Shown one piece after another: positions 42,603-48,440 of a DNA stretch of 64,000 bases; within the stretch, counting starts at the first letter, position 1; each line of letters starts with the position of its first letter. This DNA comes from Phaeosaccion multiseriatum (taxonomy: Eukaryota > Protista > Ochrophyta, other classes), in the NCBI GenBank assembly GCA_965112735.1, contig OZ218952.1, positions 4,898,001 to 4,962,000 of the forward strand, in the 5' to 3' direction. Below the pieces are notes generated by a model, which worked only from the letters and a program-made list of their open reading frames with translations, was not told where the DNA came from and made no database searches. Position numbers and translations under genes: made by a program.

Positions 42603-42825
42603 CGTCAGCGTCATATATCTCGACAGACCCTGACGTAGACTTTATGGCCACCGGCTCTACCGAAGAGACATCAATTAGCTCTAATGAGCCGTACAGTGTC
42701 ACCTCGTGGTAGTCCATATGGCCACCGGCTCTACCTACCTTCTTTTGCGAAGAGACATCAAAAAATAAAGAACGTGAAAGAAACGGACAGAAACAACGGA
42801 TCGAAACGGCTGTATTGGCTGTGTC

Positions 42826-43011
42826 TGTTGCGATATCTCCTCTACGATGACAGGGACAAGCTAGAGTAGTGTCAACTCGTGTATTAATAATACCTACTGA
42901 GAGATGCGTTCAAGGAAGTGATGGCCGTGGCCATACATGAATATCGATATCCACATCGATATTGTACGTCGATATAGTGCTCAGTCACAAATGGCGATAC
43001 TTATCACAACA
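42826..43011 (-). repeat. Copia 3' LTR
   Basis: Identical to 48124-48309. Confidence 0.97.
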
Positions 43012-43148
43012 CCCTCCTATGACTGAATCACTATCTCTCTTGATAGCTGACACTCTACCACAAACACAATGAGGAAACACCTGACTTGTCCTAAAACCCC
43101 CCCGAGACAAAGTCCTGAAAACCTCATACTAAAACTACTGAACTAAAA

Positions 43149-44756
43149 CTAGTCCCCCCCTTTCCTGTCTCCCTTCTTGAGCATCTGCCCCGCCAGACCG
43201 CTGTGTACCTGAGGTGCCAATGCCTTGGTCATGATGTCCCCAAGCTGGTCCTTTGTGCTGATGTACTGAAACCGAACGTGTCCCTTGTCCACGTGGTACT
43301 GCAGGAAATGATAACGAATGTCGATGTGACGTACGCGCTTGGTGCCCGCGTTGCCATTTGCCATCTGAATGCACCCTTGATTGTCCTCGTGCACAATCGA
43401 CTCCGTCATGTTGGCTCCTGGAAACAGAAACTCCAGAATCCCTCTGTGAAACAGCAACTCCTTCACTGCTTCCGCTGCGGCCATGTACTCACTCTCCATA
43501 GAGCACTGTGCTATGACCTTAAATAGTGTTGCCTTGTGAGCAATCACTCCCCCGCCGAATGTCACGACGTATCCCCCTGAGCTCCTGCGCCTGTCGACGT
43601 CATCTGCCCAGCTCGAGTCTGCGTATGCCTCCAGATGAAGCCCCGCCTCTCGATCAAACTCAATTCCCAAGTCTAAACTACCTCTAAAGTACCCGAAAAT
43701 GCGCTGCAATGCTGCCCAGTGTCGAGGCCCCGGCCTCTTCATAAAACGAGCACACTGCATGATGGCGAAGGATACATCAAGCCTCACCCAGTTGGCAACC
43801 CATAGGATTGACCCTACCGCTGAGCAGTATGGTTTGTCCTGCATGAATTCCTCCTCCTCTGTGGTGCTTGGCTCCATACCCACTGACAAATGTACCCCCT
43901 GCTCTGCTGGTGAGCCGTACACAGGTACCTCCGTCATGTCGAACTTCTCAAGCATCGCTCTAAGATACCCTCCTAGCGAAAGCCTGAGCTGTCCCGCCTC
44001 GAATGCGTAGTCAACTTCAACTCCCAGAAATTTCCCCACATTCGACCCCAAACGCTTCAACTTGAAACGCTCGTCAATCTCCTTGAAAGTGCAGTCAATG
44101 AGATTTCCCTCCCCTGACCCTCCTAGGTCGTCTACATATAGAATGATGAGCCCTATTAGCTCCCCCTCCTCGAACCTGGCGAACAGACACGGATCCACTG
44201 GGCACTGTACCCACCCCATTGCGAGTAGAAATGCCACCACTGTCTCGTTCCACCTCTTGGGAGACTGATGAAGACCGTACAGACTCTTCAACAGCCTCAG
44301 CACCTTCCCGAACTTTCTCATGCCCTCTGGTGCTCTAATGTACACGTACTCCCCCTCATGCAGAGGTGCATGCAGGAAAGCCGTCTCCACATCTGCAAAC
44401 TCCAATACCCACTTCTTCTGGCACGTGATAGCAAAGAACATCTTCATCGTCGAGCTCCCCACCACTGGTGCAAAGGTATCAAAGTAATCCTCCCCCTCGA
44501 TCTGCTCGTTCCCCATCACGACAAATCGACACTTGAGCCTATCCACAAGTCCCCCAGTCACCTTTGCTCTGAATAGCATGACTGTATGCAGCGCATTCAT
44601 CCCCTCTTGATAATCAACCTCCTCCCATACCTGGCGTTGCTCGATCGCGTTGAGCTCTGCCCAGTACGCCTCCGTCCATTGCTCCGCGTACTCTCCTGCT
44701 TGAGCCTGGGCCAGAGACCGCGGTATCGGTACCTCGCTCTCCTTTAGGCCTGGCAT
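43149..44756 (-). CDS. Copia reverse transcriptase-RNase H (ORF3)
   Basis: KCRFVVMGNEQ, ADVETAFLHA, LLKSLYGLHQS, LYVDDLG; RNase H YADSSWA, ESEYMA, EDNQG, RHIDIRYHF. Confidence 0.95.
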   Translation of the reverse strand: MPGLKESEVPIPRSLAQAQAGEYAEQWTEAYWAELNAIEQRQVWEEVDYQEGMNALHTVMLFRAKVTGGLVDRLKCRFVVMGNEQIEGEDYFDTFAPVVGSSTMKMFFAITCQKKWVLEFADVETAFLHAPLHEGEYVYIRAPEGMRKFGKVLRLLKSLYGLHQSPKRWNETVVAFLLAMGWVQCPVDPCLFARFEEGELIGLIILYVDDLGGSGEGNLIDCTFKEIDERFKLKRLGSNVGKFLGVEVDYAFEAGQLRLSLGGYLRAMLEKFDMTEVPVYGSPAEQGVHLSVGMEPSTTEEEEFMQDKPYCSAVGSILWVANWVRLDVSFAIMQCARFMKRPGPRHWAALQRIFGYFRGSLDLGIEFDREAGLHLEAYADSSWADDVDRRRSSGGYVVTFGGGVIAHKATLFKVIAQCSMESEYMAAAEAVKELLFHRGILEFLFPGANMTESIVHEDNQGCIQMANGNAGTKRVRHIDIRYHFLQYHVDKGHVRFQYISTKDQLGDIMTKALAPQVHSGLAGQMLKKGDRKGGD

Positions 44757-44792
44757 CAGAAAGAGTGGGCCTAGTATGGAGGAGACAGCATG

Positions 44793-46751
44793 TCAGTGCT
44801 TGCCGCTACGCGTGCGGCCCAGGCTGGGATCGTGGCCCCAGTCGTGCTCCTTGGCTCCCTTGTCGCCATCTTTGGCCACCTCGTATGTCCAGAGTTTGCC
44901 TCTCTCTGGCGGCTCAGCCTGCTGCGTTGGCTCTTCCTGCTGCTGCTCTGCCTGTTGCTGCTCTGCCTGCTGCTGCTGCTGCTCTTGCTGCTCTACTTGC
45001 TGTTTCTGCTGCTCTCTCTGTTGCTGCTTTGCCGTCTGCTCCCTCTGTTGCCGCTCGGCGTGCTGACGTCGCTCCAGGCCTTCTCCTTCGAGTTGTAACT
45101 TCTCCACGAACTCTCGGGTGAGAACCTGTTCCCAGCGTGATGTCTGTTGCTGCTGTGGGGCTGGCTGTGCCTCCTCTAATCTCGTGTTCCATGTGACGGT
45201 TCCACTCTTGGTCCCGCCCCCACCTCCCCCGCTCGCGCTACTGCTGCTGCTCCTGCTGCTGCTCCTGCTGCTGCTCCCGCTGCTGCTCCTGCTGCTGCTC
45301 CTGCTGCTGCTCCCGCTGCTGCTCCTGCTGCTGCTCCCGCTGCTCGAGGGCTGGTCCTCGTCCTCGCTGTCATCCTCCTTCTCCGCTGTCTCTGGTAGCT
45401 TCCCCTTCTCCACGTGACTCCCGAACACCGTGCCGTCGTGTCTGCGGTTCGTCACGAATGTGTAGGACGAGCTGGAGATGAACCGCTTCTGTGAAGGGAT
45501 GTAGAAAAGGAGACAGGCTGATCTGTGGTTGGGGCTCTGTCCCACGTACACTGCCGAGTGCGTCTTGTCGTTGTGCCACTGCTTGTGCTTCTTGTTGCCC
45601 ACCCGCACCTTCGCCTGCTCTCCGAAGATGTGTAGGTGCTGTAGGTCAGGCTTGCGCTTGAAATACAGCTCGTAGGGGGACTGCTGCTGCCCCCTCCTGC
45701 ACCTGGTGTTGTAGAGAAGCTGCGCCAACTTGTACGCTACGAACCTCAGCTGCTTCGAGTGCTCCTCCAGCTTCGCCTCCTCAATGAAAAGAATAGACAT
45801 TCGCGCCAGCTCCTTGTGTCGAGCCTCGTTCAGTCCGTTCTGCGCTTGACAATTGGGGTCCGTCAGCTTGACCTCAATGCCCTGGGAGTAGAGCATCTTC
45901 TTCGCTGCCTTCGTCTTGATGAGCTCCGATCCGTTGTCTGCTGACAGACACTGCACCTTGTACCCCGCTGTCCTCTCCCCTGGAATGAATACTGTGGTGT
46001 TGAGGTCGTCATACACGCTCTGGAAGTGCGCCTCCGTCTTTCCCCCCACCTTCCTGCACCAGCCCATACCCGTGTGCGGGCAGCACGCCTGCAACACGTG
46101 CTCTCCTTCGAGAGGAATGGTGTCGAGCGTTACCTGTGCCAGCGGTGCCTTGGGGTAGTCGATGAACTGCTTACTCTGAGCTGCCTTCGTCATCTTCACC
46201 TCTGCGCAAGTCTTGCACGGCGCCCTCTTCCCGCACAGTGTCACGCCCTCCAGCTTGGCCTGTCGCCGTAGTTCTTGATCGTTGCGGTGGCCCTTCTTGC
46301 AGTGGTAAGTCATGTAATCACTCCACTGCTCCGTGGCCTCCTCGATCTTGAATTGTAGCATGTCAAGCCCCAGCTCTGGGTCCTGCGTCGTGTGCACCGT
46401 CTCTGGTGCGTCTGCTGAGGGGCCGAAATAGACTGGCTTCCCCGCTGGCCTTGCGCTCCCCCCCAGTAGGTCTGAGAGGTTCTTCTCTGCAAAAATGCAG
46501 AAAGGTACGTCTGGCGACACCACTACCTCCAGCCCCTTCAGTCCTCTTTTGCCGTCGTTGGAGACGTAGCTGATGTTCACCTTCCCTTTGCCCATTATCT
46601 GCGCGTGCGACTTGCCGTCTGCGAGTTGCACTAAACTCTGATGAGCGCAGAAATCGTACAGTCCATCCAAGTTGGGCCACACATTGAGCGCCGATCCGCT
46701 GTCTGCGAGCCCCTGCCGTGTGCCATCCGCCCCCGACTTCAGCTTGGACAT
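44793..46751 (-). CDS. Copia protease-integrase (ORF2) with Ser/Gln-rich tail
   Basis: ADSGSA protease site; YHCKKGH..PCKTC Zn finger; TLDT / ADNGSE / QNGLNE as the DDE core. Confidence 0.9.
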   Translation of the reverse strand: MSKLKSGADGTRQGLADSGSALNVWPNLDGLYDFCAHQSLVQLADGKSHAQIMGKGKVNISYVSNDGKRGLKGLEVVVSPDVPFCIFAEKNLSDLLGGSARPAGKPVYFGPSADAPETVHTTQDPELGLDMLQFKIEEATEQWSDYMTYHCKKGHRNDQELRRQAKLEGVTLCGKRAPCKTCAEVKMTKAAQSKQFIDYPKAPLAQVTLDTIPLEGEHVLQACCPHTGMGWCRKVGGKTEAHFQSVYDDLNTTVFIPGERTAGYKVQCLSADNGSELIKTKAAKKMLYSQGIEVKLTDPNCQAQNGLNEARHKELARMSILFIEEAKLEEHSKQLRFVAYKLAQLLYNTRCRRGQQQSPYELYFKRKPDLQHLHIFGEQAKVRVGNKKHKQWHNDKTHSAVYVGQSPNHRSACLLFYIPSQKRFISSSSYTFVTNRRHDGTVFGSHVEKGKLPETAEKEDDSEDEDQPSSSGSSSRSSSGSSSRSSSRSSSGSSSRSSSRSSSSSASGGGGGGTKSGTVTWNTRLEEAQPAPQQQQTSRWEQVLTREFVEKLQLEGEGLERRQHAERQQREQTAKQQQREQQKQQVEQQEQQQQQAEQQQAEQQQEEPTQQAEPPERGKLWTYEVAKDGDKGAKEHDWGHDPSLGRTRSGKH

Positions 46752-48004
46752 ATGGTAGAGAGAATGGCCGCTCCCCTAGCAAAAGTACGACTTCTAACAC
46801 TCTCCTGTAGCGTCCACGGAATGCTGAAAATGGCGCTGGTGGAGCCTTCCACATGCTCGCCATCTTTCTTCTTCCTGCTGTTTGGGCAGTCTGCACGCTG
46901 GTGCCCCGGCTTGTGGCAGTTGAAACACAGCTCCTCCTTGGACGGACACGTCGTCCGCATGTGTCCCTTTCTCCCACACCTGTAACAGCGTGTGTTGGAC
47001 CGATCTTTCTCTCCTGCCCCTGTGGTGGTCTGTCTACCCCCCCCTGCTGGTTGCTGTGTCTTCTGCCTTTGCTGGTAAATGTGGAAAAGGCCCCGCTCAA
47101 GGTCCTCTCCCGCCTCCCTCGCTTGCGCTTGGAGGTCACTGTCAAACCGCTGCACTTGCTGTTTGAACCGATTAAACTCGTCCTCTGTCTCTACCGAATG
47201 ACCGTGCACTTGGCCGAACGACTCCCATCTCTGCCCCATACGCCTGAGGAACTTGTCCTTGATGATGGAGTAGGACATAGGAAGCTGCTCCTCCGTCATC
47301 AACACGTTGAGTTGGAGAAACTTGTTGAGGTAGGCAAGTCCCGTCTCCCCCACCCCTGGCCTCAGATCGTGCATCTCGGAGGTGAGAAACTCTTGTCGCT
47401 GTGACTGCGTGCTCCCCATCACTGCCTCCTTGATTGCCTGCATCAATAGTACCAGGTCCACTTGGAACCGCGCTGTGCGAGTGCGTTCTTCTATGGCATC
47501 CCTCATGTCCGAGGGAATGGCCTCCAAAATCTTGAGGCCCGTCTGTTGGTACAGACTGAACGTCAGGGCATACTTAGAGTCCCGGGAGGCGTCGTCTGCG
47601 TTGGGGATCTTATCACTATCCACCAAGAATGCCTTTGCCCCCATCCCCCCTATGTGATCCGTGACCGCTCGCATAAATCGCAAGAGAGGCATCACTCCCT
47701 CCGATTCCAACTTCTTGTCAAACTCATTGTTCTTCGGCTTGAACGTGAGTTCTAGCAGCTGCTGTGCTGTACTCCCCCCCCCGCTGGGGGTCACTGTTCC
47801 TCCGACTGAGGAGATAGTGACTGGTGCTGCGGCCGCTGCCGTGGGCACTCCTTGCTGTGTGATGTGTTTGGCCAACGCTGCCGCTATCATCTTTTCCATC
47901 ATTTCAGCCATCTGCTGCTGTGCGTCTCCTTCTATCGCGGAACTCGCACTGACGGGCGCCGCTGCGTCCGCCTTTTCAACGCCTTCTTCTTCCGCGCCTG
48001 GCAT
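46739..48004 (-). CDS. Copia Gag (ORF1) with two CCHC knuckles
   Basis: CYRCGRKGHMRTTC and CFNCHKPGHQRADC, directly downstream of the 5' LTR. Confidence 0.9.
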   Translation of the reverse strand: MPGAEEEGVEKADAAAPVSASSAIEGDAQQQMAEMMEKMIAAALAKHITQQGVPTAAAAAPVTISSVGGTVTPSGGGSTAQQLLELTFKPKNNEFDKKLESEGVMPLLRFMRAVTDHIGGMGAKAFLVDSDKIPNADDASRDSKYALTFSLYQQTGLKILEAIPSDMRDAIEERTRTARFQVDLVLLMQAIKEAVMGSTQSQRQEFLTSEMHDLRPGVGETGLAYLNKFLQLNVLMTEEQLPMSYSIIKDKFLRRMGQRWESFGQVHGHSVETEDEFNRFKQQVQRFDSDLQAQAREAGEDLERGLFHIYQQRQKTQQPAGGGRQTTTGAGEKDRSNTRCYRCGRKGHMRTTCPSKEELCFNCHKPGHQRADCPNSRKKKDGEHVEGSTSAIFSIPWTLQESVRSRTFARGAAILSTICPS

Positions 48005-48123
48005 GGCTAACGAAAGGACTCCTTCTCTCTCACTTGAGTTATCCGACCAAAACTCGCCTGTGTGCCGTCGCCGACTACGTAGAACCAGCTAGCTGTGAAG
48101 TGTCGCGACAGCGACAGCTGTCG

Positions 48124-48309
48124 TGTTGCGATATCTCCTCTACGATGACAGGGACAAGCTAGAGTAGTGTCAACTCGTGTATTAATAATACCTACTGAGA
48201 GATGCGTTCAAGGAAGTGATGGCCGTGGCCATACATGAATATCGATATCCACATCGATATTGTACGTCGATATAGTGCTCAGTCACAAATGGCGATACTT
48301 ATCACAACA
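48124..48309 (-). repeat. Copia 5' LTR
   Basis: Identical to 42826-43011. Confidence 0.97.
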
Positions 48310-48440
48310 GTGTCACCAACACGGGGGACGGGGGCGGGAAGACTTCCGTCTTCCTTTTCCCAAACGTTTAAACCTTTTTCCCGCTCCGTACGTTTGTGCC
48401 CTGATGTCCGTCCTGAGTCCCCACCGAGCAATAGGTGCGG

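Follow-up and report, generated by a model that had tools for sequence, protein, structure and literature searches.

Translational recoding is classically illustrated by long terminal repeat (LTR) retroelements and by retroviruses, in which the rationing sites described so far are found at the gag/pol border or, in the case of some retroviruses, at pro/pol. Tca2 of Candida albicans, an element of the Ty1/copia superfamily, carries an in-frame UGA that is bypassed on the full-length RNA to give the downstream Pol, and the mechanism of this bypass is itself unresolved (PMC2194720). Here, we analyze a Ty1/copia element from a 64,000-nucleotide (nt) stretch of the ochrophyte alga Phaeosaccion multiseriatum (assembly GCA_965112735.1, contig OZ218952.1, positions 4,898,001 to 4,962,000), referred to below as the window. 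The element occupies 48309-42826 of the window (5,484 bp) on the minus strand, as do all its features described below, and has an in-frame TGA between its integrase (IN) and reverse transcriptase (RT) regions. The likeness to Tca2 is in the in-frame UGA ahead of Pol sequence in a Ty1/copia element, whereas the position differs: in Tca2 the UGA lies at gag/pol, and here gag, protease (PR) and IN are upstream while RT and RNase H (RH) alone are downstream.

The gammaretrovirus murine leukemia virus (MuLV) is likewise an LTR element in which readthrough of a stop codon, as proposed here, produces a minor polymerase-bearing fusion. However, the MuLV gag-UAG-pol site has UAG-G, a compact pseudoknot 8 nt downstream and a place at the gag/pro-pol border (PMC3159437), whereas the algal site has UGA-CA, no demonstrated pseudoknot, and a location internal to pol, between IN and RT. 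In the alphavirus nsP3-UGA-nsP4 arrangement and the type I/II sites of plant viruses, the polymerase alone stands behind UGA-C and is made in low amounts, as would be the case here, and the CAR-YYA hexanucleotide of the plant-virus UAG-CAR-YYA sites is matched exactly by one algal sequence (L053, from a distant family described below). Those are, however, RNA viruses, their UGA is usually accompanied by CGG or CUA, and their sites are associated with an extended stem-loop of ~140 nt with strong covariation; in the alga, covariation is suggestive in one pair of sequences (L054/L053) and absent in another (window/L033). Within the superfamily itself, elements otherwise have one ORF with a subgenomic gag RNA from which pol is spliced out (Drosophila copia and Arabidopsis Ty1/copia) or a +1 frameshift (Ty1), and these likewise provide more structural than enzymatic protein. 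These solutions act at the gag/pol border, whereas the division discussed here is between IN and RT and has no conserved splice signal. Recoding inside the enzymatic region, with enzymes made at different levels, is found in the gag-pro-pol of betaretroviruses and deltaretroviruses; these differ in using -1 frameshifts at gag/pro and pro/pol and in their order PR-RT-RH-IN, and we know of no betaretrovirus or deltaretrovirus in which integrase belongs to the abundant product and RT to the rare one.

We consider programmed readthrough of the UGA between IN and RT to be probably the best explanation for the arrangement in the alga. The majority of ribosomes would terminate at the UGA, releasing Gag-PR-IN, and a minority would decode it by a near-cognate tRNA and produce the full Gag-PR-IN-RT-RH polyprotein, which the protease would then cut; RT would be the rationed component. 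The initial annotation of this locus had described three separate cistrons expressed by alternative splicing and had mentioned UGA-C readthrough as an alternative for the second of the two frame breaks. The comparative evidence presented below favours this alternative.

The in-frame TGA between integrase and reverse transcriptase

The PR-IN frame of the window copy (44796..46775, 660 codons) is in the -1 frame relative to gag and encodes the protease DSG, the HX4H..CX2C finger, the DDE core (D..D..E), an SH3_retrovirus domain and a Ser/Gln-rich low-complexity tail. It is followed by the TGA (44793..44795, in the context CAC-UGA-CAU-GCU), which is the proposed programmed readthrough site, and then by the RT-RH frame (43152..44792, 547 codons), with an RVT_2 match (E=6.5e-43), the YVDD motif and RNase H motifs; frame analysis places the RT-RH stop, TAG, at 43149-43151. 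We searched the genome (67 Mb, 22 contigs) for copies of the element, with stops entered as X in alignments. At 97-100% identity, the DNA search retrieved five further full-length copies along with several partial copies, and the TGA is present in every family copy that covers the site (11/11). Conservation of this second break extends to two related families.

The sister family, represented by L033 (contig 14, 2413546-2418700) and the fragments L031/L032, carries the TGA and has protein identities to the window copy of 89% in RT-RH, 48% in PR-IN and 29-41% in gag. Its junction reads GRGAARGTR-stop-HAVSSLLGPLFLMPGLKESE, with the codons CGC-TGA-CAT, and is the same in two fragments on contig 9. 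The well-conserved block shared by L033 and the window copy begins about 20 codons upstream of the TGA, a jump in identity that points to exchange of modules by recombination between copia families, at the stop or close to it. For the more distant lineages, the sequence up to 1.5 kb from the match was read. Among them, L053, L054 and L055, with 43% identity in RT and 27% in PR-IN, also carry the TGA; the junction of L054 and L055 is KPQQKSDT-stop-HSAALHALLSLAPGTKVSEVP (ACC-TGA-CAT-TCA), and that of L053 is CAG-TGA-CAA-TCA. Upstream of the TGA, this distant family has an in-phase frame that spans at least 492 codons and includes rve and SH3 domains; downstream, it has a 545-codon RVT_2 frame. 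In all lineages, the TGA has CA directly after it and an invariant Pro-Gly 12-13 codons downstream; the length of the IN-side linker differs between lineages, and the positional homology of the TGA is best set from the RT side. No copy without the TGA was found in any of the three lineages, and in the L056 lineage (58% RT identity) the junction is too decayed to score.

An assembly error at the TGA was rejected because contigs derived from independent public reads, apparently from the same organism and probably from DNA runs, have the same letters at 44793-44795 and no variant. There are zero LTR mismatches in five full copies, in which the target site duplications (TSDs) are all distinct, and the five full-length copies other than that in the window bear five other 5-bp TSDs. 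Taken together, the identical LTRs and the differing TSDs indicate that the family moved recently and repeatedly; copies with the UGA in place inserted recently and independently.

If the TGA were an inherited null mutation, the families would be non-autonomous or dead for RT and would be either mobilised in trans or immobile. The identical LTRs and fresh TSDs of five copies speak against this, as does the retention of the same stop position, with no TGA-less copy, in three lineages down to 43% RT identity. A further argument comes from the reading frame behind the stop: the ratio of nonsynonymous to synonymous divergence (dN/dS) of RT-RH is 0.086 at dS 0.81 for the window copy versus L033 and 0.10 at dS 0.33 for L054 versus L053, with zero stops or frameshifts over 545-556 codons. 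Thus, at dN/dS of about 0.09-0.10 and with no further stops across dS 0.33-0.81, the values show strong purifying selection on RT-RH behind the TGA. The null mutation nevertheless has two observations on its side, namely that every full-length assembly copy has a lesion in gag-PR and that sporadic in-frame stops occur near the IN/RT junction in decaying copia copies from metagenomes.

The metagenome copies served as a control for the latter. The second of two metagenome scans yielded 80 copia loci, 69 of them informative, with a continuous IN-RT frame (i.e., 200 or more open codons upstream in the phase of RT) in 53/69 and stops of mixed type at scattered positions in 16/69. In a well-sampled metagenome copia family, a stop near the junction was found in 3/13 members, at three different codons and of mixed type. 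Such differing positions are as expected for decay, and the fixed stop of the alga is therefore unlike the decay of copia elements. Altogether, we regard an inherited null mutation as very unlikely.

The coding sequence past the UGA and its possible decoding

Comparison of the window copy and L033 identified 6 synonymous changes versus 1 non-synonymous change, which is conservative, across the 13 codons between the UGA and the ATG at 44756, the latter included. In L054 and L055, there is no AUG in the 42 codons after the UGA, and 11 residues within this AUG-less stretch are invariant across lineages (L10, P14, G15, K17, S19, E20, P22, P24, A30, G33 and W39); the length of the post-UGA stretch differs between lineages by one whole codon. 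The substitution pattern and the AUG-less conserved stretch, along with the loss of the AG of an acceptor-like string in related copies (see below), indicate that there is no conserved start codon or acceptor, and that the stretch is read in the phase of IN. By these comparative criteria, the sequence on both sides of the UGA is coding.

The same data bear on the possibility that RT-RH is made as a separate protein, by internal initiation at an AUG or a non-AUG codon, by termination-reinitiation, or from an internal promoter at the junction as in Tca2. Such a mode of expression appears unlikely, although the window lineage does have an AUG 12 codons past the UGA and the gag-pol junction of Tca2 does hold promoter activity, albeit minor (PMC2194720). 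The ATG at 44756, taken as the start of RT in the initial annotation, is present in the window copy but is not conserved in the related families, with none in the 42 codons in L054 and L055; residues conserved across lineages precede any AUG, and the synonymous pattern begins immediately after the UGA. Furthermore, a free RT-RH protein would lack the link to Gag by which Pol is carried into particles.

Splicing of a donor-like site in the leader (48033) to 46775 and 44770, such that the PR-IN and RT-RH mRNAs would each be translated from their own AUG, is scarcely credible in light of the same comparisons. All the strings on which this model was based are present in the window copy, including the donor-like CAA/GTGAGA in the leader (the slash marks the splice boundary), and Drosophila and plant copia elements adjust the Gag/Pol ratio by splicing (PMC5580714). 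However, the first acceptor-like string, GTACTTTTGCTAG/G, is inside a 23-nt insertion that is missing from 8/9 aligned copies and from the read-derived contigs. The second, CTGAC..CTAG/G, has lost its AG (CTCGG) in L033 and L032, although L033 keeps the TGA and an intact RT-RH ORF. The AUG at 44756 is absent in L054 and L055, and the codons between the UGA and this AUG are under coding constraint. The read-derived contigs contain no joint that corresponds to 48034->46775 or 48034->44770, a weak point considering that the runs are probably DNA and have limited power. The splicing model, with its separate PR-IN and RT-RH mRNAs, is thus largely refuted by comparison of the copies, in which the acceptors are not conserved and the codons after the UGA appear to be coding.

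Dedicated decoding of the UGA, i.e., as selenocysteine, by a UGA-suppressor tRNA or under a context-dependent sense code, or its removal with a tiny in-frame intron, was considered as well. Marine algae often possess selenoprotein machinery, which can be counted in favour of selenocysteine, but no Rfam family, including the selenocysteine insertion sequence (SECIS), matched the element at E<=1, and selenocysteine was rejected. A general reassignment of UGA to a sense codon in the host was rejected on three observations: in the host NIF3 gene of the window, the stop is a TGA at the expected place, four residues past the end of the Pfam profile; the about 1,630 codons of each element include just one in-frame TGA; and L060, from another copia lineage of the same genome, has gag_pre-integrase, rve, SH3 and RVT_2 in one unbroken frame with a stop-free junction. 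The first two of these also count against the other forms of dedicated decoding. In-frame GT..AG segments of 39-60 nt can be drawn across the UGA in several lineages, as a micro-intron would require; their boundaries, however, are not conserved, the segment in L053 is 44 nt long and out of frame, and excision would remove codons under coding constraint. We consider this group of explanations highly improbable.

With these alternatives weighed, we infer ribosomal readthrough as the mechanism by which the UGA would be bypassed. The nucleotides that follow the stop are compatible with this mechanism. The C at +4 and the A at +5 are invariant across lineages, and C at +4 defines the leakiest UGA tetranucleotide in yeast (PMC4748822). 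The hexanucleotides CAR-YYA and CAR-NBA promote readthrough in plants and yeast, and CAA-UUA works behind UGA too (PMC3159437). The L053 sequence, UGA-CAA-UCA, is an exact CAR-YYA/CAR-NBA motif, whereas UGA-CAU-UCA of L054 and L055 fits at 5/6 positions.

Several observations weigh against programmed readthrough. In the window lineage, CAU-GCU fits CAR-YYA/CAR-NBA only at the first two positions (CA) and at the B position of CAR-NBA. The minimum free energy z-scores of the sequence 3' of the UGA, -1.75 to +1.0, are unremarkable; the predicted pairing partner of the +4..+22 tract shifts with the folding window; compensatory pairs between L054 and L053 number 5 in the first 200 nt and 4 in the overlapping next window, compared to 0-2 in other 200-nt windows beyond the first 250 nt; and the number of compensatory changes between the window copy and L033 is 0. 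Overall, single-sequence folds, alignment folds and sliding-window compensatory counts gave no consistent signal of 3' RNA structure. It should also be noted that in Tca2, the closest precedent among copia elements, the junction sequence alone gave no UGA readthrough in a yeast reporter (PMC2194720), and hence a conserved in-frame UGA is no proof of simple readthrough. Finally, six of the six full-length assembly copies bear some lesion of the gag-PR frame; if these lesions are real, it has to be asked which of the copies would provide the proteins.

The gag/protease break and the organization of the element

The initial annotation treated the break between gag and PR as part of the element's design. 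The features of the window copy were read correctly: the second ORF is in the -1 frame, the gag/PR-IN overlap, which is 34 nt long, has no X-XXY-YYZ heptamer, and the third ORF is in frame behind CAC-TGA-CAT. Three separate ORFs for Gag, PR-IN and RT-RH are likewise found in this copy but do not represent the layout of the family, because gag-PR-IN is one continuous frame, including the knuckles and SH3, in L007 (1,075 codons) and L009 (1,090 codons). In the same two copies, the ATG at 46751, which had been taken as the start of PR-IN and is indeed present in the window copy, encodes a Met within this continuous frame.

The break itself is due to a 23-nt insertion, TGTTAGAAGTCGTACTTTTGCTA (46777..46799), that is private to the window copy: it is absent from L002-L009 (8/9 aligned copies) and from the read-derived contigs. 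The insertion shifts the frame, supplies the TAG at 46778-46776 that bounds the PR-IN frame, and contains the first acceptor-like string, GTACTTTTGCTAG/G. Offset by one base, the 23-mer has 156 forward and 163 reverse occurrences in the genome (~319), with contigs 5 and 14 accounting for many, compared to 0 for the reversed control. Where readable, it is the outer arm of a perfect palindrome of ~88 bp, TGTTAGAAGTCGTACTTTTGCTAGACTGATACC...GGTATCAGTCTAGCAAAAGTACGACTTCTAACA, which is also found at L033:177-520, L025 and L062, in arrays spaced ~254 bp. Judging from these alignments, the gag/PR frame break is a private lesion made by a fragment of a palindromic repeat and is outside the design of the element; the single arm end left in gag is either an excision footprint or a partial copy. 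An abundant palindromic repeat of the host genome thus leaves partial copies within coding sequence. A -1 frameshift at gag/PR was rejected, given that the break is the private insertion and that L007 and L009 are continuous. By comparison of copies, the TGA is the only conserved feature of the two breaks in the window copy.

The Gag ORF of the window copy (46739..48004, with the ATG at 48004) encodes 421 amino acids with two CCHC knuckles and ends with a TGA at 46741-46739. Its last ~20 codons and this stop are out-of-frame products of the 23-nt insertion. Other lesions of the gag-PR frame were found among the copies. Two G runs, at 47037-47044 (8 or 6 G) and 46458-46464 (7 or 6 G) of the window, vary mosaically in L002-L008, and one full-length copy has a 2-nt deletion; the G-run differences and this deletion all disrupt the frame. 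Three copies pair 6 G with 6 G, a net change of -3 nt through which the zinc knuckles and the protease site would fall in the wrong frame. The variation in the G runs could be explained by sites that are truly hypermutable, by recombination between RNAs packaged together, or by assembly errors in homopolymers. The read-derived contigs share the G-run lengths of the window copy and have no 23-nt insertion, resulting in a continuous frame. The normal layout of the family is gag-PR-IN (about 1,075-1,090 codons) and RT-RH (547 codons), in the same phase and with a single UGA between them.

The window element is a young Ty1/copia LTR retrotransposon, and its identical LTRs, intact TSD and catalytic motifs are all in place as had been described. 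The 186-bp 5' LTR (48124..48309, TGTTG...CAACA, direct repeat family D3) and the 186-bp 3' LTR (42826..43011) are 100% identical, with 0 mismatches, and are flanked by the TSD GACAC at 48310..48314 on the 5' side and 42821-42825 on the 3' side, as established by reading and a scripted check. The LTRs of the TG...CA type, the 5-bp TSD and the polypurine tract beside the 3' LTR (AGGAGGG, 43012..43018; a function suggested by its position) are those of Ty1/copia elements, and so is the domain order gag - PR - IN - RT - RNase H of the Pseudoviridae. Just inside the 5' LTR, the putative primer binding site position (48105..48118) is occupied by the palindrome CGACAGCTGTCG, a feature of the family, with a duplication of GCTGTC in this copy, and the sequence 3' of the 5' LTR is unlike TGGTATCAGAGC or a TGG-type tRNA match; Ty1/copia primer binding sites are complementary to a tRNA, usually initiator Met, and there is no tRNA gene in the window. 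The 6-nt GCTGTC duplication is private to the window copy (a gap in 8/8 other aligned copies) and is also missing from the read-derived contigs. The C-terminal tail of IN consists of poly-Ser followed by a Gln/Glu-rich stretch and is encoded by CAG/AGC-type repeats (44889..45369, repeat family D1). The length of these repeats differs between copies by 12, 48, 6 and 9 nt, all of them multiples of 3, such that none disturbs the frame.

At about 2.30-2.73 Mb, contig 14 has a cluster of copies and fragments from the three copia lineages, together with solo LTRs and numerous arrays of the palindromic repeat; this interval resembles an island rich in transposable elements and is possibly pericentromeric. 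In a metatranscriptome run (X1), a 161-nt contig is identical to gag 47817-47977 and was found along with diverged pieces that match RT. This is a hint that an environmental sample contains the family or relatives of it, perhaps in transcribed form.

Searches outside the genome and implications for Ty1/copia elements

In protein collections, the best identity of the RT was 45% in a word-indexed search and 38% in an exhaustive representative search, and the PR-IN protein search gave no match at E<=1e-10; the family is therefore remote from these collections. In the exhaustive representative search, the RT was deep inside a long polyprotein in ~139 of the best 150 matches. The same architecture was not found in the first metagenome scan, and eleven RT-only matches that were checked on their own contigs had no conserved junction stop. 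One metagenome contig (L064:1-6873) contains a tandem pair of copia elements, each with a 914-aa gag-PR-IN ORF and RT-RH in a different frame, with an overlap of ~190 nt and no slippery heptamer; this single unverifiable case may represent either a 1-nt indel common to both elements or a different means of dividing pol between IN and RT. Another single unverifiable case, L066, has an in-frame TAA past the SH3 domain. In a lake metagenome, the pol frame of the copia loci L070, L081, L083 and L084 extends for about 820-860 codons ahead of RT and is preceded by an in-frame TGA and then by 250-490 more open codons upstream. These are candidates for Tca2-like gag-UGA-pol readthrough elements.

A literature search found no description of a recoding site between IN and RT in a copia element. 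What appears to be new is the position of the stop, the family membership being ordinary. We think it reasonably likely that a clade of algal Ty1/copia elements shifted the rationing of its products from the gag/pol border to the IN/RT border by means of a leaky UGA, with Gag-PR-IN as the bulk product and RT-RH as a rare extension, a strategy apparently undescribed for any LTR retroelement. The site is short and the host is a small, culturable alga, making it accessible to a reporter assay. For annotation, the consequence is that these active families would be scored as dead by pipelines that require a single intact pol ORF, and that the output of gene callers would contain RT-RH as orphan genes. 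If the proposal is true, integrase and protease would be made in stoichiometric amounts with the capsid protein and the polymerase alone would be limiting, and a recoding site between IN and RT would bear on particle assembly, on a role of integrase in bulk, and on the range of solutions to the Gag:Pol ratio.

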